Below, one piece after another: positions 12,565-53,367 of a stretch of DNA of 64,000 bases (position 1 is the stretch's first letter; every line of letters starts with the position of its first letter). The translations under genes were made by a program, and so were the position numbers. This DNA comes from Monocercomonoides exilis PA203 (lineage: Eukaryota > Protista > Preaxostyla). The DNA lies in NCBI GenBank assembly GCA_001643675.2, contig LSRY02000008.1, positions 558,001 through 622,000 of the forward strand, read 5' to 3'. The notes below the pieces were generated by a model, which saw only the letters and a list, made by a program, of their open reading frames with translations, ran no database searches and was not told the DNA's origin.

Positions 12565-13644
12565 TTGAGGGGCAGTCGCGTACGTAGTCAGATGAAGAGA
12601 TGGGACGAAGAAGAAAGCATCGAGAGCGATTCCGGAAGAACAGAAAAGCGGGAAGAAGAGCAGGGAAGATCGGAAGACTTTTTGGGAATTTTCTCAGAAG
12701 AATGGCTGACGCCCAGGAGACAGGTAGGTGAACTTAAAAGATTTATGGAGTTTTGCAAGGCAGGATCGATCAGAATAAACGATGATATCTTAAACACGTT
12801 TATTCCAGAGACGGAAAAGAGTTTCTTCACTCGACACACTGATGCGAGTTGGAACGCTTTAGCGGCGACTGGGGTCACTGCTGAAGGAAGGAAGGACTCT
12901 CCAGAAGCTGTCCGGTTCATTGAGCTGCTCCAACATACACTTGAATCGGGGTTTGAAGCTGCCAAGGCGATTGCAGCCATCACAGCATGTGAATTGAGGA
13001 AGACCCACCTAGAGGAAGAAGAGAAAGAGCGGCTGAGGGGACTTTTCTGCTCATACGCCCTGATAGCAGACTGAATCAGCCGGATAAATCTATAAAAAGT
13101 CATACCCCAGTCAAACTGGGAAAGCGCGAAAGGCTTTTTAGAAGGAGGAATGTCTAAGGAAGTGCCGGAGAACCTGAGAAAACTTGTGGAGAGCACTAGC
13201 TTTTTTGCACAGAAGGAGATGCAACAGGATACGGTGCATCTCCCGACTCAACAACAGGTTTCGGGCCCACAACAGCCAGAGGGGGACTTCCGAGAAGATA
13301 CAGTTCGGGAAGGAGCACCCAAGGATTTGTATACAGACAGCTCCAGAGAAGAGGATATGGCAGGAGCTTCACAGATTTCAGGGGAAAGAAGAGAACACCC
13401 CAGTTCCAGGCCCAGTTTGTTCCAACCATCGTGGGGAGGCCAGCCCATATCATTGGACCATTGCCCCCAGCCCCCTCAAGGACCCAAGGAGGGACAGCTA
13501 TGTGAACAACAATTGGAGCCAACAAATGGTCGCAAGAGTAAGGAGGAAAGGAGGAGAGAGAGTAGAGAGAGAAGAGAGAGCAGCGCTTTACCGCGAGGCC
13601 GAGAGAGGAGAGAGAGCAGAGAGAGGAGAGAGAGTATCAGATTT
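12565..13644 (+). pseudogene. DIRS ORF1 (gag-like) region, disrupted; continues at 29757
   Basis: Purine-rich ORFs inside the left ITR. Frame 13184 (...ERGERVSD) joins in frame to FSEVTTQRE... at 29757 once element A and one ATTT are removed. Confidence 0.6.
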
Positions 13645-13673
13645 GGGTAATTATTTTTGGGATCATACTTTTT
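13645..13673 (+). repeat. Left TIR of element A
   Basis: Reverse complement of 29728-29756 with one mismatch; preceded by TSD ATTT. Confidence 0.92.
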
Positions 13674-16600
13674 TTCGGGGTAAGTTTAAGATTATGAAAA
13701 AACAGTTTTCAAACATCAAAAATGCTTTCAGGCATCATGAATAATATCAGTCATCAACTTTCAAGTCAACAATTATAAAAAAAATAGTATTTTTAATGAT
13801 TATTGTTGGATGACCATTATTAAAAACGTAACTTGTTTGATATTTGTCTTTTTTGATGAAAAACAACTTTTACAGTTCGCACATATTGCATGAATGTTTA
13901 TGATCTATTATGATAATTTTGCGCTATCCAATAGAAATGCAATGATTTCGATTTAGAAAAATTTTATCAAATGTTACTGTTTCGCACAATCGTGAACAAA
14001 AATGAAAAACTTAATCACTTTATTGTTTGTTTCAAATATGCAACAACACTATCCAATATTGTATCAAACTTTGCAATAAATTGAGTGCAAGTTGTTAAAA
14101 ATCTAATCATTTTCTTATTTAACCGAATATTATTGTTGTTTAAAAAGTTTCATTGAATTCCATATATTTCTCGTTTTCATTTTTTTCTTTTCTTCAAAAC
14201 TGGCATTTTATTCTTCACAGTAATTATCGATTCGCAGTTTAAAAATGTTAATAATGTTTTATAAAAATATTATCTGTCTGTGTTTCTAAGTCCAAAAAAA
14301 AAAAAAAAAATGAAACAATATTGAATTTGAGACTCATTTTATCTAATAAATTAATTGCAAACTGTTCTTTTCAAAGCGAGGCATTTTGAGATAATTTTTC
14401 TCCATAAACAGAAAAAAAGTCCTCCTTCGGATTGCATTTCTTTTTCTTTTCTTTTATCTCTCACTCCCTCTTTTTTTCTTCTCCTTCTTTTCTTCAGTGC
14501 CTTCTTTGGCCTTCTCTTCTTTTCAGTCTTTCGCTTCTTTCTCATGTTCCTCTTTTGGCTTTCCTTGCTTATCTTTTTCTTTTCCATCATTTGGGCTAAT
14601 TCCTAAAATTCCTTATCTTTTTGCTCTTCTCTCTTCTCTCTTCCTCATCTCTTCCTTTTATTTTTCTGTTTTCTCTTTCTCTCTCTCTTTTCCAGCCGCT
14701 CCACAAAATTTCCTTGATGCACCTCCAGAAGCATCAATAACGATGATATTGAGTGCAGATCCTGCCAAATCGGTTGTTCAAGCCTCCTTTCTTCTTCCTC
14801 GCTTTCTCTCCCTGCCTCTCTTTCATCCCTTCTTCAATGGTTTCCATGAATCATCACAGAAGGAAGTGATGCATGTGGTGTGCTCATCTGCACCTGGAAA
14901 ATGAATAGTTTTGGTGGCAGAAGGCCAAGAAGTGTTTGTTGAAAATTTTATTGTTTTCTATTTTTGGAGAAAAGAAGGAAGTGAAATTGTATCTTCGCTG
15001 GTAGGGCAGAGGAAGCGAATTTGCGCGATGAGAGCGGCTTGAATAGCTGAAATGTCACTCAGAAGATGAGATAGTGAAATTGTGAATTCTGAAATGAGTC
15101 AAAAAAATTCATGGATGAGAAAGAAGAAGAGGGAGAAGAAAAGTGAAAACAACAAATATTTAAGTTGTTTCATGAAAGCACAAAATTACTAATTAGAAAA
15201 AAAATATATTCTGACCCTTCAGTACAAATATATAAAAAAAAATTACGAAAATCATACAAAACAACTCCAAAAAAATGCTCATATAACCAGCCATACATAT
15301 TTCACATTTCTGTTCATCTGTCTTTGCCACTTCTCCTCTTAAATCCAGTCATAATGAGAAATACGTAACAACTGTAAAGTCAATCAAATTAACAGAAAAC
15401 TTTTGAAGATGTTTGTTTTTGATGACCTCAAATTTGAAGCATCAACAGAAGAAAAAGGAGAAGAAGAAGATATTGGAAATGCCTGAGAAGTTTTACTGTT
15501 CGGGGAGCTCACAAACTGTGGCAGCTTATCGTTCTGAACAAACCCTTTGCTCTACTCGTTCTCCTTCTTCAAAATCCTCTTTTTCTCTTCTATGCGTCTC
15601 CTTAACTCCGATTTCTAATTCAACTTCGCAGTCATCTTTTCGCCTGTCTTTTCTCCTTCATTCACCTTCCTCAGCTCCGCATGAAGTTTTTCCTTTTCCT
15701 GTTCTGTCTGCTCTTTCCTGAACCTCTTCAACTTCCTTGTCACTTTTAATAACTCTCCAGTCCACTTTGCCATCTCCTGTTCCACAAATTTTATAGAATA
15801 GAATCAGGTACTGCTTCATAACGGACACAAGCTCGTCCACGTGGGAGATTATCTCTTGAAAGTTGACAAGTTGAATTTTGTTGACCAAACTGGTTTTTTT
15901 CACTTGGAAGGAAAGAGGTTGCCTTGGCTGCTCATGGATGACATTGCAAATTGAAAAAGTGGATGGAAGCGAGGTTGGATAAGAAACAGGGTTCATTTAT
16001 ATGTCTTGTGGACTGCTTTCACCGTTTGTGACTTCTGAGACACATCTGCAAAAGGATGAGCTGTGATAATAATTTTTGAAGTGTTTGGCTTTTCTGCGTT
16101 CTTTGCTTACTCCTTCTCCTCTCTCTGCATAATCTCTCGTTTGTGCTCCTCAATCATCATTCTTCTCTTTTCTTTGTTGTTCCATGCCAGCTTTTTCATA
16201 TGCTTCTCACAACGCTATTCCTTCCAGAATATCATCGTTAGCGACAACATTGACAACAAGTGAGTCAAATGCAACGTAAGTTTCGCCTTGGTCAGCGTAA
16301 AAATATTGTGCATTAACATAGGTTTATACATATTATGCTTCAGGTTCGTATCAATCTCCTTCTTCTCATGCATCTGATGCTTTTCGGTCTTCAGCTTCTC
16401 CTCTCCATCATCCCCCTACAGCCACAGTTAGAAAACAAGTTTCTTTTTTTCCACTTCTTGTTATGTTTGCTTCCACGAAGCCACTTCGATTGCCTTGTCG
16501 TCTTCTCCTCTTCCGCCATCTTTCCATTCGCTTTGTACCGATTGCAGTGCCATCATCTCATTCGCTGCCTCGTGGTGTTGTAGCGATTTCTGAGTTCTTC

Positions 16601-18050
16601 TTCTTTTCTCTTTCTCTTCCTTTCTCATTCATTATTTCTCCTGAGCAATTTCTCAACGCGTATTGCACTCATCTCACGTTGTTTTTCTCTGTGAATGTCT
16701 TTCCAAACAATCTGACAGAGAAAATTTGAAAATCTTGACGAAAAAGGATTGACGCCTGCACCGTTATCGTATCGCTGATGCTGTAACATAAGATTATTTT
16801 CTTCTTTGGAATAAATAAAAGGAGGAAAATAAAAGGAGGAGGAGAAGAGGGGGAGGAGAGGAGGAAGGAGAAGGAGGAGGAGAAGAAGAAACCAGATTAT
16901 TTGAGAATACAACTAAAGTTAGATCAGATGGAGAAGTAGAAGACATAAAATTTCATTATTGAAGTTGTTATTGGTGATCTTCACAAAGAAGTTGAACACT
17001 ATCACTCGCTAAATTGGAACAAAGTAACTTTCCTTGAAAATATTAATATATAAATAACATTTCTTCTTATCATCAAAAAAAAAATTCAGATCACATATAT
17101 ACAAAGAAAGAAAAATCTTTTTATAATTATTTGTGTAAATGCGCTCAAATAAAAAAACGAAAGAAGGATGAATAAAGCTTAATCAGCTTCGCAATAAATC
17201 AAAGCAATATGATGCAAACAACAAACTCCGTTATAAGATTCCCGCAAATTTTTCTGTGATTTGAACATAACATTCAAAAGCCATGTTTTCAATTGGATGC
17301 TCATCTTTGGACTTTTCTTTGATCTCTGAATATTGTTCTTTTTTTCGGATTCTTTTTTCTCCGTTCCTTTCTTCGTTCATTTTCACTTAATTCCTTATTA
17401 ATAAACTATTTATCTCTGCATTCAAAATCTTCATTGCAACAAAAAGTGAATTCCAAAAAATATTTTGGTCTATATTGAAGTGTAATTCATCATTCAGGCA
17501 ATATTTATGAATCTTTGTTAGTGTTTTTCCGTGCTTCAAAAACGCTTCGCAGGCATTTCAATTTTCTGAAAAGAAAGCGTTACAGCAAATTGTTGAAAAG
17601 CAACAGTTGCATTTATAAATCATTCACTATTGATTTTTTAAACAGAATATTTCATTGTTGCAATGAAAACAAACTTTATGAATTAGCTTTTTGATCAATG
17701 TCAATAGATAAATCATTCTATGATTTGCTTCTCAATTTCAGTTTATACAAATATTATCGTTAATTCAAAGCTAAATCAACGAGAGTTCTGGTTTTTTTTT
17801 CTACGCACTTTAAATTACTAATCCAATCTGCCCTGAAAATGTGTAGAAAACTTGTGAATTATAATTCAATATTAACATAATACATTTCTTGATCTTTTCA
17901 CTGAATAAAAGTTAATTGAAAAATGAATAATTTTAATAGAAAGCAATGTGATACATTAAAATAAAACATCAAATGCCGACATTTGAAAAACAGAAAAAAA
18001 TAAAACTAATGAAAAAAAAGAATTTCAATATTGAAACGAATTTATTAAAT

Positions 18051-18235
18051 GATTGTCTACCCTGGGAGGCTGATTCTGGACCCAAAGCCTTCAAGGGACT
18101 GTGCTGGACCGGTCACAGCACAGTCCCAGGACGGAATCAGCCTAGCCTCATTTATTTCGCTCAAGAGCGAAAATTGAGGTACCAGAAAGCATTTGTTTGA
18201 AGCAAATACTTAATGGCTTGAGCAGCAGACAAATC
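18051..18235 (-). ncRNA. Putative structured RNA or 3' element downstream of the element-A transposase
   Basis: GC-rich island with nested stems: gggactgtgctg 18095-18106 / cagcacagtccc 18116-18127; aggctgattc / gaatcagcct; tttcgctc / gagcgaaa; closing stem ttgtctgc / gtagacaa. Internal mismatches read as G-U on the minus (sense) strand. Shares CAGCCTCCCAGG with 44903-44914. Confidence 0.55.
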
Positions 18236-18303
18236 AAAAAACGTCGTTCGTTTCAATATAAAATTCTAAAAAAACAAAATAACTCATCAATAAGACCAGA
18301 ACT

Positions 18304-21300
18304 TTAAAAACAAATTGTATCCAATTTTTTCCTATCATTTAATAGTTTTCTTGTAGCATTCCCTATTTCAAACATTTCTGTTTTGCGAGAATATTTTTTA
18401 GAGGATTTTATCATCCTTTCATCTCTTATGCTTTTTTCAAGGAAGTTCATTAACTCTTTTCCTCGGGAATCTTGTGGTGAACACACAGATCTGAATATTT
18501 GATTACCTCGTTTCTCATAGAACAAATACGTCTTTATGGACTTCGCTTCAATTTTCCTCCATCGTATTTTATTTCCAGAAGAGTGTCTGAGTTAATAAAG
18601 AAATGAAGAAAATGAAAAAAAAATTTTCATAAATGATTCACACTTGACAAAATATCGTGTTGTCTTTTGATAATTATCCAAGTTGTTTTGGTGGGAATCA
18701 TATAAGTCATCTGTATGGTCTTTTAGAAATTTAATAAGTTCATCAATATTATTAAGAGAAGGTCCATTGGACAAGTTATTTTTTACACAGTTTGTCAGAT
18801 TCCCGAATTCTCCGTCACATTCACTTTTTCCATGTTTTTCACAAAAAAAGGAAAGAGTTGTTCGTTTGCCTTTGACGGGAGAAGAGTTGTCAGAAAGGAG
18901 AAAATGCATAAGCTGGGAATTCCGAAAGTGTGGCCCTGTATCACATACAAAATGAAGAGTTTGCTTGTCTTTAACGATTTCATCTTCCAAAACTTGCTTC
19001 AGACATTCAATGGTGAAACGGTAGTCGTGAGATAGAGCGTTTGAGAAGAAGTTAAAAATGTGCTTTTCTTTGTCTCCTTTCTTGTTAACAATGAAAACAA
19101 TTACACAAAAATGTGTGATTTCCTCTTTTTCGTAATAATCTCGGCTTATTTGATTTTTGCAAATAGGAAGCGTCCAATTTTCTTTAAAGTCGAACAAAAC
19201 CAACGCTTCCGAAAACGAAATGTTCTTTTTGATTTGATGGAAGTGCTGACGTTGATTTGACGCCAGAAAACGGTGTTTTTCAATAAGTCTTATTGTTTGT
19301 TGCTCTTGATCATTCAATGTTTGTGATTTTGTTTTTAGATATTCTTCTTTTTTCTTCAGATGATTGAACATTTCACATAAGTTGCACAAGTCAGTTCGCC
19401 TGGAAGCCCTTTTAAGGTGTTTCGTCTTTTTGTAGAAAGAACTTTTTGACATTTTAATATTCGTGGTTTCCATTAACTTTCTGAATAGCTGCGCTTTTGT
19501 TGAATTGATGATACGAACTTTTTGTTTTTTGATATGTGAATAAGAATTGTTTGGAGAACCATGAAAGAACGGATTATTGACGTTTGCATTTTGTGAATCT
19601 TTATGTCGATAATTGTGAAGGGTTGAAAAGGATCGATTAGGATTTGTTGATCTGTTTTTTGTTTCACTCAATTGGCTGGATGAAATCATTTCTGGAAAGA
19701 GAGATTGTTTTCCATTTGGTTTAGTAGATGCGGTTGAATTATGAGTGAGATGATTATTAATTGTTGTATTATTAGTTTCACAGTCTTTTGAGTTCGTTTG
19801 ATAATTGCAATTAGAAGAAAATTCGTTAGAAAAAGGAAGAAATGAAGTGTCTATTTCAGATGTGATGGAACATTCGGAATGTCGATTTGATAAACCAAAT
19901 AAGGACGATTTTTTGTGGTGATTTTCTGACGAAGAATGGACATAAGTAATTTCATCATCATATATTATTGAAGGTGAAGTGGAATGATGTGGATTTGTCG
20001 TATTAGGATGAAGTGAATAAGAAGGATCTTGTAATAAACCATTACAATTAATGCAAACCGAACGAACATTTGTTTTACTCTGATTCATTGATGAAATATT
20101 ATTCGAAAAAGAACTTCCTTGATGTGATAGTCCCAATTGAAACAAATTTGGTGAAGCAATATCGGAAACAGGAATGCATCCACTATTCTCCTGAGAGTAA
20201 ACAATCAGAAACGGAATTGAACCTTTGTTTATGTGAGAGTTTGTTTCTGTTGTAATTTCATTATTAATGAAGGATATTTCTCCGTCGTAACAAATATACC
20301 AACAATCTTTGCATGATGTACATTTTGGCGATGGGCATCTGCTTCTACACATTGCATAAAAATGTCCACAATCTTTCGATCCTCGATGAAACAGGACTGC
20401 TATCAACCGATAATTGTACATATTTTCTGAATGGAAAGGAAAAGCCTTAATTGTTTCTTCATTCTTTAAAAATGAAATTTGTAATGGAATGTTGTATATT
20501 TTCTTTTGATCAAATTTATCAGATTCAAGAGTGATTGTTAAAATATGAGGGAATTGAAGGATATTCATTATTGAATATTGATCTGTATTTTTCTGACATC
20601 TGAGACAAAAGGCCTCTCTCTTCTTTGTATTTGTTTGACCTGATGAGAATGATTTATTAAATTCCGAAATGACATCTGAACCGTGAAGTCGAACTAATGG
20701 AGTAGATTCACAAATTCCATACTCATATGATCCACATTCACAACATTTTCTTGGAAATGATTGGTTCGTTCTCATTTGGTTTGCTAATGCTGGTGTTATT
20801 GAAATTAGATCCTGGTACATATTAAAAAATGTTTCATAACATTCTTGTTGTTCACACTTTTTCAGTCCATGCCTTTTTTCCCAACATCTCACAAAAGGCA
20901 AGGACCAAGATTGTGGGACATTATTATTGTTAATGTTAACTGAACAATCCAAAAATTGGACAATGTCCAGCAAACGATGCAAATAGTGTGAAATCTTCCC
21001 TTTTCGTGTACAAAATCGTTCTGAGTGCAAATAAATAGAACGGAACACTTGTAGCATTGCAGCGAGATAACAAGTGTTTCCCATGTTTGGTAACGGATAA
21101 TAATTCTTGTTTTCTCTCTGTGTTCCAGTTTGTGCAGAGTGCTGATTATTCTTTGAACAGCATTCGATGATTGAGCTGCAAGAAGAAATCGAGTCTTGAC
21201 TATTCTTTATTGAATTTTCATTGGTTTCGTTGGAATAATGCAGTTCTTCATTTTTTTCAATCTCCATATTTTCTCCATTATTGCTTTGCGATGTTAATTC

Positions 21301-22276
21301 TGATAAATCCAAATTTATTTCCGGTTCGAAACAGCTTTCTTCATCCATTTCACATTGAACGTCCAAAAGTGAAATTTCATCATCTATCTTCATGTGAATG
21401 AATTCATTGTTTTTTGAATTGTTTGATTCTTCTGCTGTCTGCAAATATTCGCTTCTTGTGTTGTTCTCAGTGAAATAATGATAAAGAGGATCTTCATCTT
21501 CTTCCATTTCTTCGCTGCAGTTTATGATTTTGAAATCATCATCTATTTCCATTGAAGATTCTGAAAGTGATAATTCTTCAACACTTTTAATTAAAGAACC
21601 CAATAAGAAGACAAACTGTTATTCTGTTGTGACAACTTACAAATGCATTTCGATGATTCGGTTGAATTTTCATTTATGAAATCAGTGAAAACTTTTTCAT
21701 CTTCTGGGCTCATCTCTATTAAAATGTTAATATATGATAAAGAACAAATTATAGATGAACAGTTTCACATTTTTTTCAATAAAGAATTAGATCAAACTTC
21801 GTTTTGATGGGGGAAGAGCAGCTTTTTTTGGAGTTCGAAAATCAAACGATGTGTACGAGCTATTATCCTTTGCGTGATAATAGCTTCCATGAGAACATTC
21901 AAAACCCAAATCGATCAATTGCGAGAGGGCATATTCCTGGCAAACACATTTTAAAAGCGTCACTTTTGTATGTGGATTTTCTTCTCGATTATATGCAGAC
22001 GCTAATCGCAATATTACATATTGATTTCGATCTTCAGTAGTCAAAAGTTTCAAAGAGTTTGATAAATATAAATACAAAGACGAAAAACAAAAACAAACCG
22101 TTAAATATTTTTTGAATCTGGGGAAATATTTTTTTACCCGTATTTGTATGGAAGAACATGTACTTCAGCATTTCCACACAATCATTTGCAGATTTGTTTG
22201 ATAGATACTCCCAAACATCTCTGCATTTTTCGCTTTTCCTCGAGTTTGATAAAAGAGAAAACTTGATTCGTTCCAT
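18304..22276 (-). CDS. Sola-like DDD transposase with internal USP (peptidase C19) deubiquitinase domain, about 1236 aa. Predicted exons 22276-22099, 22031-21798, 21715-21617, 21560-18644, 18586-18304
   Basis: USP Cys box LPNMGNTCYLAAMLQ, EQQECYE, CxxC pairs, His box GHFYAMC..CYD. Transposase motifs RRTDLCNLCE, FDFKEN, CDTGPHFRN, FFCEKHGKSECDG. The GT-AG introns give one continuous frame; the 21561-21616 intron is the least certain. Confidence 0.85.
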
Positions 22277-29727: not shown

Positions 29728-29756
29728 AAAAAGTATGATCCCAAAAAAAATTACCC
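29728..29756 (-). repeat. Right TIR of element A
   Basis: Ends ...TTACCC and is followed by TSD ATTT. Confidence 0.92.
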
Positions 29757-30618: not shown

Positions 30619-30646
30619 GGGTGATTTTTTTTGATATCATAAAAAA
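30619..30646 (+). repeat. Left TIR of element B
   Basis: Exact reverse complement of 51744-51771. Confidence 0.93.
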
Positions 30647-37695: not shown

Positions 37696-38145
37696 AAAGT
37701 ATTAGCAAACTGGTAAAAAGTTGGAAAAGTTAGTGGTTTTAAAAAAATGAAAGAAACAAAACTCCAGCTTTAATCAGAACCATATCTTTTTGAATTTTTG
37801 AATATTTATTAAAAAAAAAACAAATATCAGAAAAATTTTGATTTTTTGTTTAATAGTTATGTATGTGATAAGAGTTAGAAAAATGTTTTTTCTGAATTTT
37901 TAAAACTTGTATTCATGGAAAAAACTTCTGTTTTCCGCTTCAAACAATGAAGATGACAGAAGGATCAGAATCTCGATGCCACTTTTTTTTGTTCAAAATG
38001 GTTTATTTCATCGATTTAACTTCATATATTACTAAAAAACTGCTTTTTGAAATCTGCAATTTTCGCCCTTTAGCGCGTAATTTTTTGATCTTTTTGCCCT
38101 CGAAAAAAATAAAATATAGGGTCGGATCCTTTTTTTCATTCAAAA
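37696..38145 (+). repeat. Left arm of a 450-bp inner inverted repeat enclosing the two USP genes
   Basis: Reverse complement of 45658-46107. The coordinate sums at both ends are identical (no net indel), with about 2 mismatches seen by eye. Confidence 0.93.
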
Positions 38146-38539
38146 TTGACAATGTTGAGTATAGTCGAATTTTTAAAATTTGTGATTTAAAAATCGTATA
38201 CGGACAGGTATCATATAAATTTTCTGAAAATAAATTTTATTTGTTTTTTTAATAGCAATGTTAATGTTATTGATGTTTTCATATTTTTCATTTTTTATTT
38301 TTATTTTAAATTATGATACGTTTTTTTGTAATTTTGAAGGATTTGTCATTTCAGAAGAAATTCATAATTCAAATAAAAAATATTTCATTCATTATAAATG
38401 TTTTCTTGAGAAAACTGTAAAAAATCAAACTGAAAACATCAAGAGAGGAAGTGAGAAAATTGAAAAAAGAAAAATTCGAAAATAAAAATCGCAAGGAAAA
38501 AAAAGTAAAAATTAAAGCAAAAAAAGACAAAGAACAAAA

Positions 38540-40435: not shown

Positions 40436-40674
40436 CAGATTTTCACTAAAAATTTCAATTTGAAATATTTAATTCACATTTATATTAAAAAAAAATTATA
40501 AACTCTCTGGCTTTGGAAAAAAATCCAAAATCCTTTCATTCATCGAGAAAAAAATAAATTAAATTTTTTCTGTTTGAAAATTAAAAACAATGACGATCAC
40601 AAAATGACAATATTATCACGTGTCTGATTTATGCCGGAAATGATAAATAACGACATATGTACTTTATTTATTGG

Positions 40675-40785
40675 AAAAAAACTGTTTTCGGCTCCTTGCA
40701 CTTTCCCCCCTTTAGCACTTTTTTTTTTGATCTTTTTGACTCCTTCGAATTTTGAATTATGGATCTGATTCTTTTTTCATTGAAG
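40675..40785 (+). repeat. Degenerate third copy of the inner part of the 450-bp IR
   Basis: aaaaaactgttttc..tgcactttcccccctttagcac..ttttgatctttttgac..ggatctgattcttttttcattgaa aligns with 38034-38145. Confidence 0.65.
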
Positions 40786-41090
40786 AACAATATTATATAT
40801 ATTTTTAAGAACTTTTTATATGAGAATGATATTTTTCATAAGATAAGAATATTTATGTGATGAATTTTTCAATAAACCTTCAATTTAAGAATTCTTTAAT
40901 TTTTCCAATTTTTTTCTGATAAGAAATATTTAAAATTTTTTTCTATAATTCAAATCACGTTAAAAAAATTTTTTAACAATTTTGGAAATAGTCAAATAAT
41001 GAAAAAATAACAATACATATTTTTTTAAATAAAAAAAAATTTTTTTAGAATAATTGTGATTTTCCATAAGAAAATATTTATTAGAGAAAA

Positions 41091-44000
41091 ATGTCGATTT
41101 CAAAACGCGAATCGACATTAAATTCTCGTTGCAATGTTCTATGGCAAGAAATAAAGAGAATCGGCGGAAATGACGTGGATTCGTTGCTTGCCTATTTGTT
41201 TTACACTTACAGGCAATCATCTTCAGTAATTGATGATTTACTGAAGTCTTTGAATGGTTTAGTTTTTTATTTTTTTGTATTGTGTTGAAAATATTATTTT
41301 CACTCTCTGTTATTTTTTTCTTTTTGATTTGTTAATTATTTATTTTTTTTTGAAACAGAATATCACATAAAGCTGCTGGAAGACCTGTCTGTGGTGTACA
41401 ACAACGCTCCGTTGCACACTCAGACAACAATGCTACAAGCACTGTCCCGCAACACATCATTATCCGATTTACAGGACTATGGATATGATGTCACAGAAGG
41501 AAAATTTATTTATGCGAAGCAAACGCTCAAAAAGAACCAAGGATTTATCATTCCTCCACAAATACCTCATCTTCCGTCTTGCAAAAGTGGTTTGTTTTTA
41601 TTTGAATTTTTTTTTGAATAATTTTCTCTGTTTATTTTAGGCTTAAATGAACAGGATTGGGAAAAGGGCAACAACTGGATGTTAGCCCATTCAACTGAAG
41701 CCTCCACTTCGCTTCAGTCAGCAAAGAAAAAGCAGCGAACTGAGCCAGATTACGCAAGATTTATTGATGAAGCAGCTTGGGAAGAAGAAATAATTACGGA
41801 AAATTCTTCTTCAAATAAAAAACAATCTTCTTCTTCTTCAACATCATCTCAACAAAATAAAAATTCAAAAACCATTTCAGAAAAAAATTCTCCTTCTTCA
41901 AATTCTTCTTCTTCTCAAGCTGTTGATGCTCCAATCAACACTCCAATAAGGAGAGAAAGGGGGTCAACAAAAAACCAAAATAAAAATTCATATCACAAGC
42001 GTCATTCTTCTCCATCTCCAATACCAATTCACAAAATATTCAAATCAAAAACTTCTTCTTCACAAATTTCAATTTCAAAAAAATTGAAAGAAAAAATAAA
42101 TTCTTCATCATTTCAAAATGATAATGTGTTTGTAAGTGAGCAATTAGTAGATTATGCCACTTCACCCACATTAATTCCACCTCAAGCATTTCAAAATCTC
42201 TTTTCTTCATTTTCAAAAGAGAATGACACTTCAATACTTCAACAACAAAGCATTCAATCTTCAAATAATGAAATATCTATTCAAAATAATTCTTCAAAAA
42301 ATATTTCAAAAAAGAATGCAAAAGAAAATTCAATAAAAAATTATTCTCATTCTCAATCTTTCTCAAATTCATTAAATTCATCAAATAAATCATCACAAAT
42401 AGCAAAAGGATTGCCTAACTTAGGCAACACATGCTATTTGGCTTCTCTTCTTCAATGTTTCTCTTCAATAACTATTCAAAAACCATCTTTATTCAAAAAA
42501 CAAACATCTTTGAAGAACACATCTTCGCGTGTTATAAGTGTTTGTCAACAACTGGCTAAAGATGGAACGGCAGTACGTTCATGGGTCCCATCTCTTATTG
42601 ACAAATGGGAAAATTTCTGCAACTATGGAAGCAGACAGCAGCAAAACGTGGCTGAGGCATTTGACAATCTTCACCAACTTCTTCAAAAAGATGAGTTGAT
42701 AAATAAGGACACCTTCAATCCTGTTTTAATCACTCATTTCAAATGCCAAAAATGCCAAAAAATTTCATCACGTTTCAACGAAGTTTGTAACAATGTTGTT
42801 ATTAATTCTTCCTCGACTCATAATGGATTATCTTCTCTCTTTGCAACTGAAGTTTTGGAAGGAAAGAATAGTGTCTATTGTGATGCATGCAAGGAAAAAT
42901 GCTGTGCTGCGAGATGGGAGGAAATGGCTGTATTTCCAGAGGTGCTAGCCCTCTGTCATGAATGTACTGATTCTGCTAGTTCAGCACCTTCGAGAACATT
43001 ACTAATGGAAACAGATAGAGTCAATCAACGCACGTTTTGCAAAGGGTTTTCTTCTAAAGATATTCAACATCTTCAAAAAGATAATCAAGAAACCATCATA
43101 TATCATTTTTCTGGACAAATACTATTCAAACGTCTGGATCAACAAAACGGACATTACATTGCAATTGTGAAAAGAAAAAGTGGAATCAATAGTTTTTGGA
43201 GTATTTGCAATGATGAAAGTGTTTCTGAATTCGATAGTGACAAATGGAGTTCTTCATGGAATAATCTTCACTCACAAGGTTTCACTCCTTCCCTTTCATT
43301 TTACACAAAAGAAAAAACAAAACCAACACTATCTACTATTCAATTTGGTGGTTCTTCTTCTTCTTCAGATACATCAAATTTAAACACTTTAAATAACATA
43401 TCATCATCATCATCATCATCATTCATCACTCCACTTCATCCAACAACTTCCATTCCACAACTATCATCATCAATCACATCTTCTTATGGATTAGAAGCTT
43501 TGAAAGAAAAAAGAACGAAAATGGGCATCTTTTCTCCCAATGAGAAAAGATTAATCTTCAAACCCAAGACAAAATTATGGAGTGAGTTCACAGAAGAAAC
43601 AAACATCAAAGTTTCTCTGTCACATTTCTACAAACTCACTACCAACTTTTCCAAAGCGAAAAGACGTACAGATCTTTGTGGAATGTGCGAGAAACTCAAC
43701 TATCTCGAAAACAAACTGAAGTCTTCACAAAATAAAAATGGACTTTCTTCTGCCGAATTTCATACACTCAAACTTCTTCGACAACACCGACTTGTTGCTG
43801 AAATGCAACGAAAACACTATCAATCAACTGTCGACAATCTGAAAGAGGGAGAAGCAGTCTTCGTCTTCGACTTTAAAGAAAAATGGAAACTCCCGATCAG
43901 AAAGAACCAACTTCAACAAGAATTCTTTAATTATCAACAAGTCTCTCAATTCACAATCATCTCTCTTCAAAAAATTAATAATCAACAAATAAAACGAACT

Positions 44001-44786
44001 TTCAACTTCTTCTCCGACTGCCTCTCAAATGATCACAGATTTGTTATTGAGTGTCTGGAATCTGTGATCAAAAGACATTTCTTCTCAGACACTCACACTT
44101 TTAAGTTCTTCTGCGATTCTGGTCCACACAACAGAAATCGCTTCCTTCTTCATTTCATCCTCTCAAAACAATCAAAACTTCTCAAAAAGAAAAATACTCA
44201 ACTCAACTTCTTCGCTGAGCATCATGGAAAAAATATCTGTGATAGTGAATTTGGTGCGTTAGTGAATGCAATCGACAACAATCTTTCGACTGAACACATC
44301 ACCACACTTCATGATTTGATCAACTTCTTCGAAAACAATATGAACACTTCGACATCAGCTTCTTCAACTTCACAATCAAACATTTTCTCAACATCATCAT
44401 CGAACTCTTCACCATCTTCAACATCTGTCAATAACTTTGAGCATGAGAGGTACTTTGAAGAATATGTACCATCTCAGCAAATTTCATGGCCATCTCTGTC
44501 AGTCCCTCACATGAAGGACTACTTGTATTTTGAGCGCAAAGGCTCATTTGTCTCTGCTTCAGCTGTTGGATATCTTCCTCAACGCTCTCTGGTTGCCCTC
44601 GAATCTTCAACAATGAAAGAAAAAGTTCAAAGATCAAGAAAGTCATTTCACTCTGATATCACATCATCTAACTCTTCTCTTCTTTCTCAATCTTCTCAAG
44701 ATCTTCTTTCAAGGAGATTTGAGCTTCTTCTTGACTCTTCTTCTTTTAATGAATCTCAAAATTGTTCTTTTGGTGTCCCCTATTAA
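41091..44786 (+). CDS. Sola-like DDD transposase with internal USP (peptidase C19) deubiquitinase domain, about 1180 aa. Predicted exons 41091-41256, 41359-41589, 41641-44786
   Basis: USP motifs GLPNLGNTCYLASLLQC, QQQNVAEAF, CQKC/CDAC, GHYIAIVK..CNDESV. Transposase motifs RRTDLCGMCE, FDFKEK, CDSGPHNRN, FFAEHHGKNICDS. Two GT-AG introns at the same positions as in the element-A gene; frame intact. Confidence 0.88.
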
Positions 44787-44790
44787 GAAA

Positions 44791-44928
44791 CTAGTTGTTG
44801 TGCATGCTTAGCTGGCACTCTATCGGAAGGGTGCTGGACGTGACTGTTCGTATTAGATATTGCAGCCTTCGGGCTGCAATATCCGGACCTGGATACGACG
44901 AACAGCCTCCCAGGTGCACAACAGTTAG
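44791..44928 (+). ncRNA. Putative structured RNA or 3' element immediately after the element-B transposase stop codon
   Basis: Closing stem ctagttgttgtgca / tgcacaacagttag; hairpin ggcactc / gggtgct; stem ctgttcgt / acgaacag; perfect 12-bp hairpin gatattgcagcc-TTCG-ggctgcaatatc (44856-44883). G-U pairs fall on the sense strand. Confidence 0.6.
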
Positions 44929-45657
44929 AATCCGATTGTTTTCTTTTGGTTATTGTCCCTGATATGTCCCTATTTATTTCTTGGTTATTGTCCCGCTTAT
45001 ACATGTATATATCGAGATTCATTAATATATAGAGTTGTGAAGGAATTCATTGATCTTTGAGTGAGGTTTTTGGAAGGGAGAGTTGTTGAGAGTGTGAAAT
45101 GTTGTTTTATCATTGTGTCTGTCTTTTTTCTTTGTTGGATTTGATCTTTTTGAGTCAAAGAGAGAGAAATATCAGAAAGGGGTGAGTGGATGGAAAACAG
45201 AGGGAAAATGGACAAGTTTGTTTTTGAACTTTTAATATTAGTATTCTTTTTTGTTTGGAATTGTCTTTGATACCACGAATTTGTTGTTATAGTACAGTTT
45301 TTTCTTATATCTTTTATTGTTCAAAATTGTTGACATTTTGTCGATATTTGGTGAATGTTTTATGATTATGTAATAAAACTTTGTTTAATTGAAAGTTGAT
45401 GAATTTGATTAGAAAATTTCTAACTGTTTTCAATTTTTTAAATGATTAATATCATGAAGTACTTTTTGTTTTTTTATGCCATTTTGATTGGTGGATGATT
45501 GTTATTTTTTAACGTATTTTTTTTCATTTCACTCATTTTTCTATGATTTTCAGTAAAACTCAATTACAAAAATGAAACACATTTTTGAAACGACCACTCA
45601 TCTAATCATTCAGTAATGCATGAAAAATGAAAAAATATGACTCATACACAACAACAT

Positions 45658-46107
45658 TTTTGAATGAAAAAAAGGATCCGACCCTATATTTTATTTTTTT
45701 CGAGGGCAAAAAGATCAAAAAATTACGCGCTAAAGGGCGAAAATTGCAGATTTCAAAAAGCAGTTTTTTAGTAATATATGAAGTTAAATCGATGAAATAA
45801 ACCATTTTGAACAAAAAAAAGTGGCATCGAGATTCTGATCCTTCTGTCATCTTCATTGTTTGAAGCGGAAAACAGAAGTTTTTTCCATGAATACAAGTTT
45901 TAAAAATTCAGAAAAAACATTTTTCTAACTCTTATCACATACATAACTATTAAACAAAAAATCAAAATTTTTCTGATATTTGTTTTTTTTTTAATAAATA
46001 ATTAAAAATTCAAAAAGATATGGTTCTGATTAAAGCTGGAGTTTTGTTTCTTTCATTTTTTTAAAACCACTAACTTTTCCAACTTTTTACCAGTTTGCTA
46101 ATACTTT
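45658..46107 (-). repeat. Right arm of the 450-bp inner inverted repeat
   Basis: Reverse complement of 37696-38145; gives the duplicated spurious ORF MKMTEGSESRCH... on both strands. Confidence 0.93.
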
Positions 46108-49100
46108 CTTTTTTTTAATGTTTGTAGTAATGCTATTATTTCTCAAATATATTTTTTATTTACCACTTTTTTTAAAAAATATGTCATAATATATTCAAAA
46201 TCTTTATATTTTATGTTTGTTTGTCAGTAATATCTGATTCTTAAACTGTTGGCCTGTATTTATCTTGCGTTGCGGCTTTTATGAGAAATGGTTTTTTATA
46301 AAAAAAATGGAGAATTTCATCAGATTCTGCTTTCAACCGAACATATTTTCTGGCGCTGATTGAGTTCACTCTGCTGCTCGTGCGCCAACAAGAAGAATGA
46401 AATATCATGCATTCATTCATCTTCTTGGCGAGTTGCAATAATTATTGAAGCAGTGGCATTTTTTTATTTATGAAATGCTTTTACAGCGCATTGTTGCTAA
46501 TTCAATGAGACGGGGAATTCAATTGTTTGTCGACTGGAGACAGCAGCGGAAGAGCAAGAAATGTAAAAGAATGCTCATGTTTTATGCAGGACAAGGGAGA
46601 TTTGTTTTGCAGAAACAGAACTGCAGAGAAAGGAAACGAACGAGAACAAAAGATGGAGGTAAGAAAAAGGAATGAGAAGCAAGAGAGGTAGAATGGAAAA
46701 TTAGAAAGGTTATTTTGTTCAATCTATTTAATTCAATCTTCTTTTTTTTTTTCAATTTTGAACTTAATAATTATAATTTCAAGATCCTTGCATGATTTTT
46801 TATTATTTTTTCTCTGATTCAGATACAGATAACATTCTCACATGGCTTTTTTTGACGAAGCAGACGCGTCTGTTGAATATGCTAGTCTCAGAATTGCGAG
46901 CAGAAAACAGATGGTGCGGCGTTGGTGTGCGTCCATTTGGTTGGTGATGGGCTGAAACATGGCGTGCCGAGAGTTGACAGTCGAAGAACAAAATGCAGGA
47001 GTTGATTTGGCCGTTTGAGTGGAAGATGCAGGAGCATCGGTAGAACCTGGCGCGAATGCGGGAGTTTGATAAGCCACGAAAGACATAGCGGACAGCTGGA
47101 GCAGAAGAAGTGGTGTCGCCGACGCTGCTGCTGTTGAAGCAGCGGGGGGAGTTCTATAAGGAATCGGAGCTTTCGTGCGTGACTGCGGTGCATAAGAAGA
47201 AAATTGTCTGGGAAGATAACAAAGTGTTAGTGAAGCTGCTTGAGTGCAAGAAGTGTGAGCCTTGTGAAGTTGTGTTAAAGATACGGGAGACATGACGGGA
47301 GCTGAACTGAAAGATGGGAGATAAGAATGTGAAGAGGATGGAGGTGGAGATGAGCAAGAAGATGCTTGCGAGTCAGCAGATGGAAGAGAGAAAGTGGAAG
47401 AGAGAGAAGAAAAAGAAGGAGATGAAGACAATGAGAACTGCAAAAAGATGGAGGATGAGAGAGAAGAACGAAATTTTGTTCAGCGGAGATAACATAGAAG
47501 GGAAATTGACGTCGCCAATTGAGAGAGAAAGAGAAAGAGGAAATAGAGTTGAGCACGAGGGTTCTTTATAGACAGAGAAAGATGGCATTTCCAAAAGCAA
47601 AGTCGATAGAATGATGCATTTGGAGTTATTTGATCAAGGCAGAACATCTCTTGTTATTCCTTCCTGCGAAGAATGACTGCTGTCAGGAAAATTAGTGGAA
47701 CACAAAGACTACTTGGGTTTTATTTCGCAATGAAGATAAGCAGAGGTGGGCAATACGAACTCAATGAGAAGGTGCTAAAGAGGAGATGGACTATTTTCTG
47801 TGGAGGACGAAGAGAACGAAGAGAGAAGGAAAAGCGAGCTGAGAGTGCTATATGGCAGCTCGTCAGAAGCATCGAAGTCTGCTTCGAAGAAAAGCAGACG
47901 TGCTTGTGATACGTCTTCAGTGATTTTATCATTATCATCATCTTCTTCTTCTTCTTCTTCTTCAAAGCCTCACTCACACTCTCATTCCTTAAATTCGTCC
48001 CATTCAAAATCCAGCTCGTCAACAACAACCTTATCTCCTTCCTCAACAGCTGTTCCAACTGCATCATTATCATCACCTTCTTCTTCAACTTCTTCTATTT
48101 CATCTTCTTCATCAGCCTCTCAAAATACATCTGTTATCAAACAATTTTGTCATCCTCTCCAGCCACTTGCACAGACACACAAGAAGCACAGCTATCGCAC
48201 ACTCAAACCGATCTCTATTGCGCATCCACGCTCAACACTCTCGCAAAATGCAGCTGAAATCAAAAGGCAGAAGAGGAAGCCAGCATCAAGTCAGAAGCGG
48301 AACTCGTCTCTATCACCTTTTTCTTTGATGTTATCTTCTTCCATTGCTACTTCCTCTTCCTCTGCATCTTCATTGATTTCTTCTCCATCTTCAAATCTGC
48401 TCTCTTATTCTATTTCTTCCAAAAAGAAAACTGAGAATGGAAATGAAAAAGAAAAGAAAAGAAAAGCGAAAATGATGCCAAAATTGCAACAACTCACAGC
48501 TCTCCTGAAACGACACATGAGGAAAACGAAGATGATGCAGAAAATCAGCCAAATGGTATTATCACTTCTCATCTAAATGCCTCTTCGAAACCAGATAGAA
48601 AAGTATTTCCATCTTCTTCAATATAAATTCGACTGACTATTTCGACGTCGTCTCCACATTCAGACTTAGTTATATATTCTTCTTCTTCTTCGTTTTCTTC
48701 ATCATCCTCTTCTTCTTCTGTTCTTCAAGAAATACAGTGCTCGCTCCATTTCACACTTCCTTCTCTTCTCCACCACTGGGTCTGCTGTGTTGAGACTTTC
48801 GTACGGAGAAGCACTATGGAAGACAGTGTGTTGCTGCTGCCTGTTGATGGATGGGACATAGAGAAGCTTGTGTGCGACGGAGAAGAGGGGATTTTGGCTC
48901 GCATACTGAAATATCCGCAGGAGCTGAGGTTTGCTGAGAAAGGAATGAAGGCACTGGAAGACAGAGAGGATGAGATCTGGGCAAGGAGGATGAGAGAAAA
49001 GGAGAAAAGGAAGAAGGAAAGAAAGAGAAAAGATGGAGAAGGAAAAGAGAGGAAGGATAGAGAAAGAAAAGAAGAAGAGGATGATAAATCCATAAATAAG

Positions 49101-51743
49101 CTCAATACAAACATAGAAGCAAATGATGTTGAAATTAACTCACAATCGTTGCCTTCATCTTCTCTTTCGTCGTCATCATCTTCTTCTTCATATTCTTCAA
49201 CAGAAAGTATTAAAGAACAGAATGTGAATGCACACACAACAAATGCAGCTGATGATGCTTTTCTTCAACCTCCTCTGAATATTCCTCCTCCTCCTCCTCT
49301 TTCCGCTCAAGCTCAATTCAATGCCTCTGCTCTCTTCTCAACTACTTCTTCCATACTCCCCTATGCACCTCCTCCAACCTTTCCTTCCTTTCCTTCCTTT
49401 CCTTTTTTTCCCCCTCCTCCTCCTCCTCCTTCTTCTTCTTCTTATCCTTCCTCTTCCTCTTCTTCGTATTCCCTTTTTCCATTTTCTCTTCCCCATCATC
49501 TTATTATATCTTCGCAACTCGATTCATCTTCATCTTCTCCTTTTCCTTCTTCCCCTTCTTCAATTCCCCCATATCCCCTTCTTATCTTTCTTTCTCTCAG
49601 AGCAAGGAATGACAGATTTCGAGGAGTGTTATTTCATCTGTTTCTTCCTTAACACGAAAGCCTGAAAGCATTGATACGAAAGGCAGAGGAGAGAGATGAT
49701 TGTTAATTCAGCGCCGAGTGAATCAACAGTTGAGGAGCCACTAAGATGTGCCAGGAAAAATGACTCCGCCTCCTCATTTGAACGAGGCGATCTTGAGTGC
49801 TCTAACAGATCAAGCAGATGAGGTTGCAGCTGGCAGTGAGGGAAAATAAACAAATGGAAAGGCTTTAACTGGTGAGCTGGAAGCTGTCGGTATACACACT
49901 CCAACAGAGCTTGTCGAGCGAGATGATAGTGAAGATGGAACGCATCATGCTGAAGAAGCATATTGACTGATTTCACAGCAAGATGAAAATAACAACACTG
50001 AAACCTCCAATGGCGAGATACGTGGTGATGAGATACTCAACAAAGTTGCTGATGTCATCGTCGAGCAGGAGCAGAGGCTGGCAGCACTGAGGACGGAGAG
50101 GTTGGTGTCGGAGGGGAAGAGGGAGGAAGCGGGGAGAGCACGAAGAGCAGGGCATGTGAAGTGGAAGGAATAAACAGATATGTTGGAGGGGCGAAGGGTT
50201 CTTCAACAAGAACAAATGAGGGTGGGGTTGAGGCGGACGAGCTGGTCAGCCGCGGAAAAGAGGAAGGAGTACACAGCTAGTTATCCGTCGAGGAGGGAGA
50301 AGAGGGAAGAGTGGGCTGATCCAGAGGGAGTTTTCTATTGAGCGGCAGATGCAGAGAACAACAGTGGAAAGGGAGATGCAGGTCTCAAGCAGGTAGCTGA
50401 CCTGGCGGGCAGAGGAGCCGGTGTCTTGGTCGACGAATATCTGGTGGACGCGGAAGAATGTGATGAAGGGGAGGAGGTCGACATCGAGGTTGGGGTCGGT
50501 GGGAGGAGTGGGAGGCGATGGAGGGGGTGAAGGAAAGGATGCGAAGTGGAGGTTGAGAATGGAGAGGGGGAGGTCGGCGCCGGCTGTGTCCAGCACGAAT
50601 TCGCTGAGCTCATCGATGGCAAACACCACGCGCTCGAGGGAAAACTGTCAAATAGCGTCTGCCTCCCCCAAGAACACCCAGCTGCTCAATCCATGGGTCT
50701 GTGCCTGGCCTCGCTAGCCTCCTCATGCATCGCTGCGATCTTTATGCATCCCCCGTCTCAGCTCCCCCTTCTCCCCTCCACCAATCATACACTCGCTGCA
50801 CTCCACCACGCTGCTGCTCCCAGTGCACTTGATCTGTGAAAACGCTGTGCTCGCAATTTTGCACAGTGTTTCGAACTCTCATGGCACCAGCCTCCAAGAG
50901 CTGATTGTTATCAGCCTGAAAACCATCATCTCCACTTTCAAAAGTTACTCTAACATCCTCATTCAAGGTCGAAACTGAATTAAGCAAGACTGCAGAAGAA
51001 TTCAAGCAAACTTATTCACATATCTGTCCAGCTTTCAAAGTGATTTTCGAAGAGGAAGAAATAGCGCAAAGAAGAATATTCAAAAAATGGTTGAATGGAA
51101 TGTTCATCAAACAACTTAGGCAATGCTTAAAAGAAAAACAGATGATGAAAAAGATGTATTCATAATAGTTGTGAGCTTTTTTAGTGAAAAAAGTGAAATT
51201 TTTCTTATTTCTTTTTAATTTTTTTTGATTCTAACTTTGCAATTTTTAAAAATAACTTTGATCAATCTATTAAAATAACTTCTTTGAAGTATTATTTATT
51301 TCCAAGCAAATATCAACGACAAATTGTTGTATATTTGATAAATGTCTTGAGTTTCTATTCTCTTTTTCAATGTTTATTATTGAATATCGATTGTTTTTAA
51401 CGAAAGTTTTAAGATCTTCAATATTTATATATAAATTTCTTTCCAATAACATCATAAAACTTATTATAATATAAAAAATTATTGATTTCATATAGTTATT
51501 ATTGTTATCATGTTATATTAATGATTAAAAAAATGTTTTGTTGCGTTTATTGAATTTTCGATATTTTTTTTTGAAATTATTTTTATTTCAAGATATTTGA
51601 AATAAAATCAATTGTAAACAATTTTAAACGAACAAATAAATTATATTAACAATATATGAATGCAGATTTTTGCATGATCATCATTTTTATTTTTCTTTTT
51701 TAAGCAACCCTTAATGAAAATTTTTTCTGATCAAACGTCGGAA

Positions 51744-51771
51744 TTTTTTATGATATCAAAAAAAATCACCC
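51744..51771 (-). repeat. Right TIR of element B
   Basis: Ends ...TCACCC and is followed by TSD ATGT. Confidence 0.93.
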
Positions 51772-53317
51772 ATGTCAAAGTGGACGAGCAATTCAGTCAC
51801 TATCTGTGCTTCAGCTTTCAAAGTCAATGTTACGCTAACGTAGGGACGCCATTTGGAGCAAGGGATGCGCCCAGAGTATTCACAAAGATAAAGAGACCGG
51901 CGGAGTCATATATCAGAGAACAGTGGAAAGTGAAGCTGGCAATATATCTAGAAAACATTCTCCTTATGCACCCAGACAGGGAAGTTTTGAGATCGATCTC
52001 ACAGGAGATAGCTCAGTTCCTGAGAAATCTGAGCTGGATACTGTTGGAAGAGAAATTGAACTTGTAATCAACAAGGAGTGTGGAGTTTTTGGGATGGAGT
52101 TGGAATTCAGAGAAAATGGAAGTGACGCTCCAAGAGAGGAAGAGAGTGCTGCTCCTGGAGGATGTGCGAATCTGGATAGCACATGCAAAGAAAAGGAGGA
52201 GACAAAGGACGAGGGATTTAGCAGCACTCCTCGGGAGGTTGAATTTTGTGAGGTTACAACACCCACCAGCGAGCTTGTGGATGGTGCGAATGCAATATGT
52301 TCTGGGGCAGGCAATAGCCCGCGGGGGCTGAAAGGGAACGGGAATAGCCAACACAATGTTGTTGGGAGAATTAACACACTGGAGAAAGATACTTCAAGAA
52401 AACAGACCAAGGAGTCTGAAGAGAAGGAACAGACCTGCGGTACTAACGACGGACGCTTCAGAGCTGGGATTGTGTGCAGTGCCAACAATACTGAAAGAGA
52501 GCAGGGAAGAGAAGATATATGTCCATGGAAGTTGGACGCGCAAGGAGAGTGCATTAGCGATCAACGAGAAAGAGTCCAGGGCAGTGTTGAGGACACTAGA
52601 GAGAAAGTGAGTGTGACTGCAACAACAGAGGATAGACCATATTCGTCTGAGGACAGACAATATGTCCACGAGATGGACAATACAGAAGAAGAGGGTTGCG
52701 CCATCGCTCATTCCAATACTGAGAGCATTGGAGAAGAAGCTGAACAGCCTGGACATTACAATACAGATGGAACATCTCCCGGGAGAGCAGAACACGGAAG
52801 CAGATGCACTCAGTCGGATGGCGAAAAAGCCGGACTATGCACTGAAGGGGGAGAAGGTTGCAGAGATATTGCAAACAGTCGCACCGAGAACACTGGAAAC
52901 AATTTCAGAACCGATTGCGCAGGTGCCTTGCGGAAGTTCTTGGAGACTTTCCTCCATGAGAAAGAAGTGTGAGAGAGAGAGAGAGAAACGCAAGGAAATG
53001 AGATAGTACTAGTCCACCCGTTCCTGAGAAACATCGGAAGGACTCTGAAAGAGAAGATGAACGAAGCCCAGAGGGATCTAACGATTCTGATTCTGCCAGC
53101 CTGGCGGGGGCGGACCTGGACCACGTTACTGCAGCCTGGGCATTTGATAAGGAACCTGGGGAACTTTCAGGAGTGCATGATACCAAGAGCAAAGATGAGA
53201 AGGGAAGGCTGGAAATTATTCCCAGGAGATGTAATAAGCATTATACTGGAGAGGAAAATATCCCAGGAAGGGACCTCTTCTAAACATGGGGTGAATACGT
53301 CGGAGCAAGAGATATAG
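51772..53317 (+). pseudogene. DIRS reverse transcriptase C-terminal part, RNase H and MT-like remnant
   Basis: PFGARDAPRVFTK; YLEN (degenerate YLDD); EFLGW; LTTDASELG; INEKE; TDN; HLPGEQNTEADALSR; ILILPAWRGRTW. In-frame stops present. Confidence 0.88.
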
Positions 53318-53367
53318 CAGCAGCAATACTGAAAAACCAGAAGAGTGAAAGATATACGTGGAGAGCG

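Follow-up and report, generated by a model that had tools for sequence, protein, structure and literature searches.

Giant Sola2-type DNA transposons with a ubiquitin-specific protease domain in their transposase in Monocercomonoides exilis

The window analyzed here is a 64,000-nucleotide stretch of the Monocercomonoides exilis PA203 genome (assembly GCA_001643675.2, contig LSRY02000008.1, positions 558,001 to 622,000), and all coordinates count from its first letter. It holds two very large DNA transposons, A and B, inserted in a DIRS retrotransposon, and each encodes a transposase joined to a ubiquitin-specific protease (USP) domain. The elements, their terminal inverted repeats (TIRs), their target site duplications (TSDs) and the parts of the target are as follows.

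12700-13644, + strand: DIRS retrotransposon (target), part 5′ of A; many genomic copies, empty at the A site
13645-29756: element A, 16,112 bp, autonomous-type Sola2 transposon, identified by TIRs, TSD and further copies
13645-13672 and 29729-29756: TIRs of A, 28 bp, 27/28 identical
13641-13644 and 29757-29760: TSD of A, ATTT
29757-30618, + strand: DIRS part separating A and B (target), identified by copies in the genome and frame reading
30619-51771: element B, 21,153 bp, autonomous-type Sola2 transposon, identified by TIRs, TSD and near-identical copies
30619-30646 and 51744-51771: TIRs of B, 28 bp, 28/28 identical
30615-30618 and 51772-51775: TSD of B, ATGT
51772-54636, + strand: DIRS part 3′ of B, with reverse transcriptase (RVT_1) and tyrosine recombinase (Phage_integrase)

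Two TIR-bounded insertions and their copies

We confirmed that A and B are real TIR-bounded insertions, and the ends, TIRs and 4-bp TSDs given in a first-pass annotation of this DNA proved exact. Both sets of TIRs begin with GGG. When each arm plus its flank was searched against the genome, likeness to other element copies ended at the TIR and likeness to DIRS copies began there. Empty sites, which the first-pass annotation had predicted for other DIRS copies, were searched for with the element flanks separately, by reference. In six DIRS copies (C52, C53, C26, C91, C37 and C33) the left flank of A lies 1.74-1.78 kb from the right flank of B, compared with 39 kb in the window and about 1.80 kb predicted without both elements. 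In six others (C20, C8, C30, C7, C10 and C17) a gap of 3-8 bp separates the left-flank match of A from the right-flank match, with the left-flank matches stopping 24-30 bp before the TIR within a variable GA tract. From these spacings we conclude that both empty sites exist. Once the elements are removed, the DIRS reading frames resume as FSEV and (V)KVDEQ. The proposed restoration of the DIRS frames therefore holds locally, in a target copy that is itself degenerate and full of stops.

We considered whether collapsed or chimeric repeats in the assembly could have produced this arrangement. Logan contigs break in repeats, and in the Logan contigs searched no read or contig formally bridges a junction, a point that counts against our interpretation. 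However, one 188-nt Logan contig crosses the right junction of A with zero differences, with only 12 bases inside the element, each copy is marked by a matching TSD and substitutions of its own, and the assembly was built from long reads (PMC8767320). An assembly artefact is thus extremely improbable.

A genome-wide search with a combined TIR pattern gave 614 forward and 609 reverse matches and no control matches. A-type ends formed 10 pairs of 15.1-21.1 kb, all 10 with a matching TSD, which would be expected by chance with a probability of about 4e-8 given the observed 4-mer frequencies. Among the first 100 exact B-type ends listed, 19 pairs were made by eye and 18 of them had a matching TSD; ten measured 4.5-6.9 kb and nine 12-22 kb, and five of the nine large ones enclose a listed transposase. 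All of these 100 ends are flanked by ANNT, for which the search pattern had fixed only A/T at the first flank position. Full element copies, compared by coordinates, include about 11 further full-length copies of A genome-wide, and the architecture of B recurs nearly identically at four loci (C23, C50, C93 and C28; 21.1-22.6 kb). The B transposase is present at 45 or more loci, and the A transposase at no fewer than about 12 close loci plus many diverged families at 40-55%, these counts being lower bounds. The search for paired ends thus turned up the further TIR-bounded copies that had been anticipated, and these results show that short GGGT-starting TIRs delimit 15-22-kb units, which transposed in their entirety into ANNT sites and duplicated 4 bp there. 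As a rough estimate, some 600 end pairs with a mean near 11 kb would come to several Mb of the genome. This Sola2 family puts a name to part of the 35% of the M. exilis genome reported as unclassified repeats (PMC8767320).

At 55700-55720, ATAT followed by GGGTA and a T-run probably marks the left end of another Sola2-type element, the third here, extending beyond the window. About 7 kb inside it lies a 73% paralog (62819-63142) of a piece of the cargo of A.

The transposase and its USP domain

18307-22279, − strand: USP-transposase gene of A; main open reading frame (ORF) 18592-21618, probable last exon 18307-18591, small N-terminal exons inferred
20251-21090, − strand: USP (Peptidase C19) domain of the A transposase; Pfam UCH E 1.8e-14; Cys, His and Asp boxes
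41090-44786, + strand: USP-transposase gene of B; main ORF 41622-44786, two small exons inferred, USP 42408-43244
43869, 44115 and 44241: catalytic Asp codons of the B transposase
38540-39715, − strand: second, stand-alone USP gene of B (main exon), divergent from the transposase; Pfam UCH E 4e-6; catalytic boxes; annotated MONOS paralogs

The exons of the transposase genes were read separately. The main ORFs of A and B encode 1,003 and 1,035 amino acids (aa), and in both the three aspartates (DFKE, CD(S/T)GPH, HGK..CD) come after the UCH match. Each element had been described as encoding one transposase-USP fusion of about 1200 aa; the fusion is found in both, its length needs the inferred extra exons, and B encodes a stand-alone USP as well. 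The core carries the motifs RTDLCxxC, H, DFKE, CD(S/T)GPH and HGKxxCD, of which the D-x-C-x-x-C ... H upstream of the catalytic core is nearly invariant among 96 sequences. The three aspartates (DDD) are kept in 29/30 copies of the B transposase, and the predicted core structure (pLDDT 88) resembles integrases and mariner transposases (Z 10.0-10.7, root mean square deviation 2.9-4.1). These results show that the enzyme of A and B is an RNase H-fold DDD transposase.

A two-sequence profile of the A and B cores led to 1,578 representatives and matched P0090 with an E of 1e-26. P0090 is PPL_04538 of Heterostelium, which agrees with the published Sola2_PPa-1 transposase over the core motifs; the A transposase matches it at 27% over 280 aa (pairwise E 4e-34). 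GRG termini are a trait of Sola2. A and B thus combine homology to a named Sola2 transposase with a 4-bp AT-rich TSD, short GRG-type TIRs and the upstream Cys/His motif. The placement of this DDD family closest to Sola2, as first proposed, fits these comparisons, in which, as in the quick-mode tree, a single Sola2 sequence is the only named Sola reference. An AWWT target preference is also a hallmark of Sola1 (PMC3845634). The statement that Sola2 members are typically a few kb went too far, because Sola2 elements of 10.3-15.3 kb have been published (PMC3627910), and A and B extend the size range to about 22 kb.

In Blattamonas nauphoetae a Sola2 relative (L035:9749-18925) has a 1,578-aa model with no Pfam match. 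It is flanked by imperfect 48-nt inverted repeats about 9.2 kb apart, one of which begins GGGTGAT, and no clean TSD was seen there. A separate 3.1-kb Blattamonas unit (L035:4727-7877) has perfect 45-nt inverted repeats enclosing a 568-aa gene.

Pfam UCH scored above cut-off in three ORFs, those of A, of B and of the stand-alone gene in B. The Cys, His and Asp boxes are complete, finger cysteines are present, and the PDB matches of the USP are themselves USPs. The catalytic Cys, His and Asp are kept in 30/30 B copies. In pairwise, non-independent comparisons of the 30 best-scoring B copies, the USP had a dN/dS of 0.21, against 0.07 in the core and about 0.42 in the linkers, which indicates that the USP is under purifying selection. 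Synonymous divergence in the same gene (copies L001-L030) was 0.68 in the USP, 0.43 in the core and 0.18 in the C-terminus; the higher value in the USP suggests that gene segments may have been exchanged between copies.

The USP is inserted between the N-terminal domain and the core. Relatives outside the species, P0036 of Streblomastix and P0161 in the sister clade, join these two parts directly without a USP, and a search for the origin of the USP returned M. exilis element proteins only. A distant Sola2-type transposase from a metagenome contig (P0162, L032:79-2712), placed elsewhere from A and B in the quick-mode tree, has a HeH/LEM-like domain and a C-terminal OTU with Cys and His motifs. 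Since this OTU differs from the USP in class and in position, it would represent an independent gain. Among other Sola2-type relatives we noted a zf-CW in P0164 and a weak MBD match in P0165.

It could be argued that the USP does not act on ubiquitin and that the transposase core is instead released or licensed by it, either through self-processing proteolysis or through a role as a structural adaptor. Its position between the DNA-binding N-terminal part and the core, within long disordered linkers, would suit such a role, as would its great divergence from host-type USPs. However, the domain has complete catalytic boxes and finger cysteines, B also retains a stand-alone USP copy, and other transposons recruit different ubiquitin-family proteases, so we consider this explanation unlikely.

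The invertible core of B and the cargo arms

37650-46153: core cassette of B, 8.5 kb, bounded by ~500-bp inverted repeats (37650-38174 and 45631-46153)
40661-40787, + strand: relic of a third repeat copy, from the inner end of the inverted repeat, 71% identity
30647-37649: left arm of B; coding-like pieces, decayed and of mosaic make-up across subfamilies; no Pfam family
46154-51743: right arm of B; decayed coding-like pieces; 96% full-length in C23, C50 and C93; no significant Pfam family
25528-28619, + strand: captured, decayed internal fragment of a giant host-type gene in A; 85-88% DNA identity to two C1 loci
27123-27332: ubiquitin-like domain inside the A cargo; Pfam ubiquitin E 6.5e-16
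25190-25513, + strand: A fragment with weak IQCH-like ATP-grasp similarity (below the Pfam cut-off); 73% paralog at 62819-63142

The near-perfect ~500-bp inverted repeats of B enclose the two divergent USP genes, and the core spans 8.47-8.57 kb in nine copies. Its orientation varies between copies: the transposase points toward the right arm in C80, C59, C36 and C58 and toward the left arm in C50 and C44, where the left arm continues through the repeat into a reversed core. We infer that recombination between the repeats is the simplest cause of this inversion. Other B copies have up to 1.9 kb of arm sequence mirrored on both sides. In copies L008 and L009 the repeat lies directly upstream of the transposase, which together with the remnant at 40661-40787 suggests that the second USP may have been added later.

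Such repeats raise the question of whether what really moves in B is the 8.5-kb core, with the 500-bp repeats as its termini, lodged inside a non-autonomous Sola2 element of greater age. The near-perfect repeat does enclose both USP genes, and shorter repeat-transposase-repeat units exist (L008 and L009). We rejected this nested long-TIR element as the mobile unit because the core has the same flanks and span in nine copies and no TSD was seen at the core ends. Moreover, the repeats vary in length and sequence between subfamilies and can include arm sequence, and A lacks such a repeat yet is bounded by related TIRs. We therefore regard a nested mobile core as highly improbable and take the whole TIR-bounded element to be the unit that moves.

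The sequence outside the transposase had been described as mostly host-like gene fragments. This could be demonstrated for about 3.1 kb of A alone. Two donor-type C1 loci carry the same segment without the flanks of A or the rest of A, and the stop-free frames that contain a 204-aa test piece at these loci run to 2,829 and 1,942 aa. The same piece in 11 other A copies lies in frames of 117-818 aa, with stops inside it in 6/11. Among the A cargo copies, aa identity (74-89%) is below DNA identity (87-94%), and the traced cargo covers 3.1-3.7 kb from the interior of an 8.5-kb frame. This segment of A was thus captured from a family of host-type genes and has since decayed neutrally. The arms of B have a GC content of 41%, compared with 32% in the core, and look like decayed coding DNA. 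No long ORFs were found in the arms of A and B, and when 20 fragments of arms and exons were scanned with Pfam, ubiquitin was the sole family to pass the cut-off. Leads from an Atlas search connecting a cargo piece to MACPF were all below 0.9 and were not accepted.

Two further sets of related sequence lie apart from this cargo. The same host gene segment recurs in a second group of copies, interrupted by stops (46-62% aa), on C1, C6, C8, C15, C17, C33, C39, C51, C69 and C91, and this group is possibly the cargo of another element family. A decayed 69% paralog of the ubiquitin-containing cargo of A is found at 625-1615, outside any TIR pair found in the window.

The arms are common end to end to close copies, about 11 for A (89-99%) and four to seven for B (87-96%). 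In B-type elements that are more distant, the likeness is confined to either the outer or the inner part of an arm, and a portion of the left arm of B is also present in transposase-less 6-kb derivatives at C6 and C32. Because the arms are full-length in close copies and partial in distant ones, the cargo is fixed within subfamilies and mosaic between them. It passes to whole subfamilies rather than being specific to single copies, and it is reshuffled between subfamilies.

The family had also been likened to the Starships. Starships of fungi have a tyrosine recombinase at the element start and carry intact accessory genes. With them A and B share large size and passenger DNA only, as a captain and intact genes are absent here. 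The transposase is a central DDD enzyme, the only tyrosine recombinase in view is that of the DIRS target, and the traced cargo is a broken internal fragment rather than an intact gene set, so we discarded the comparison. A related proposal would make A and B adaptive vehicles whose arms hold working genes useful to the host or to the element, the cargo being their purpose. The arms are kept full-length in many copies, the ubiquitin domain of A lies in a 203-codon open stretch, and selection on cargo was examined for the A piece only. However, the fragmentary nature of the traced cargo, the stops in other copies, aa identity below DNA identity and the lack of long ORFs in the arms make a Starship-like vehicle very unlikely. 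We infer that the cargo is passive baggage.

Relation to known systems and proposed transposition

The closest published elements are the Sola2 transposons with Fanzor cargo from slime moulds (DFa-1/2/3 and PPa-1/4/5; Bao and Jurka 2013, PMC3627910), which have the same RTDxCxxC, DFKEN, DxxxH and HGKSxxD motifs, a 4-bp A..T TSD and short TIRs (12-22 bp there, 28 bp here). They measure 10.3-15.3 kb, compared with 15-22 kb here, and consist of a constant transposase and an exchanged passenger region with an intact Fanzor gene. In contrast, A and B carry broken pieces of host genes and have a central transposase with an inserted USP and, in B, an invertible core. Hundreds of ends were found here, compared with 2-12 copies of the slime-mould elements.

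Ubiquitin-family cysteine proteases are also fused to DDE/D transposases in Ginger1 and Mutator, where they are OTU or Ulp1, and Trichomonas, also a metamonad, has a transposase_11-Peptidase C19 fusion of the same C19 class (XP_001314237; PMC2836005). Those fusions belong to other transposase superfamilies and to elements of 2.6-7.1 kb, with OTU or Ulp1 C-terminal in Ginger1, whereas the protease here is internal, multi-copy and under selection. VTD and OTU deubiquitinases of Helitrons are likewise transposon-borne, and protection of transposition proteins from the proteasome has been proposed for them (PMC9741609). They are of another protease class and sit in rolling-circle elements; deubiquitinase activity has been shown for the VTD domains and is predicted here.

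Like Pack-MULEs and gene-capturing CACTA elements and Helitrons, A amplifies host gene fragments between its TIRs by transposition (PMC6431247). The description of the family as Pack-like was thus right about the captured pieces, with a fragment of an intact parent present in one segment of A. Unlike Pack-MULEs, which are non-autonomous, mostly 1-2 kb and <7 kb (PMC6431247), A and B have open transposase frames and 10-13-kb arms, and only the 4.5-7-kb derivatives fit. En/Spm families of 16-20 kb are known in Chondrus crispus (PMC6431247). In the papers that could be searched, outside which lie most subscription journals and Repbase, we found neither the A/B family nor any Sola2 with a USP described. 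The earlier impression of an undescribed family therefore holds for this literature, with precedent for each trait (PMC3627910, PMC2836005): what is new there is the combination, the size and a selected USP in Sola2. The occurrence of the B core in both orientations is a further new observation, alongside the Sola2 transposase that bears an OTU.

Based on these results, we think it likely that A and B belong to two diverged families within a host-specific radiation of giant Sola2 transposons in M. exilis. Cut-and-paste transposition into ANNT is well supported; the transposase would bind the TIRs, excise and integrate the element, and also move the 4.5-7-kb derivatives in trans. By analogy with other TIR families, the arms may grow and reshuffle as the excision gap is repaired from other templates, and recombination between the 500-bp inner repeats would flip the core. 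For the USP, we lean toward a role in stripping ubiquitin from the transposase, or from chromatin or repair proteins at the transposition site, which would protect the enzyme from the proteasome or ease integration.

Besides the unbridged junctions, several points weigh against this interpretation. A cargo donor was traced for one A segment only, and that donor may itself sit in another large element. The USPs of A, B and the stand-alone gene are only 22-25% identical, the domain evolves three times faster than the core, and the evidence for its selection comes from comparisons that are not independent. The full-length structure model has low confidence in the USP part and failed there, and both deubiquitinase activity and expression are predictions from sequence.

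That ubiquitin removal aids transposition has already been proposed for OTU, Ulp1 and VTD domains (PMC2836005, PMC9741609), and a multi-copy, selected USP-transposase fusion allows that proposal to be tested. A far-reaching version would see these elements as one of the main engines of the Monocercomonoides genome: Sola2 copies, several hundred in number (a few Mb), would make up a sizeable share of the unclassified repeats and scatter pieces of giant gene families, an active USP would be a counter-defence enzyme needed for moving 15-22-kb loads, Sola2 would have recruited deubiquitinases at least twice (USP here, OTU elsewhere), and the core with its two USPs, being invertible, would act as a regulated switch. 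Taken jointly, these ideas are possible but doubtful. For annotation, our results are a warning that many annotated MONOS "hypothetical" and USP genes are parts of transposons or dead cargo.

Two structured elements and a pair of repeat ORFs were also observed in the window.

18050-18199, − strand: stem-loop downstream of the A transposase, fold z −4.6
44790-44935, + strand: stem-loop immediately following the stop codon of B, ~95% conservation across 29 further copies, z −4.8
3026-4972, − strand, and 9506-11074, + strand: two ORFs of 30-aa (90-nt) repeats, ~70% alike, in inverted orientation

Neither stem-loop had an Rfam match at gathering score, and a likeness to HDV-type ribozymes, seen by eye, was unsupported and is not claimed. 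Both multi-stem elements share AGCCTCCCAGG, and a complementary CCTGG upstream could form a pseudoknot. One hairpin loop of the B-type stem-loop is inverted in some B copies.

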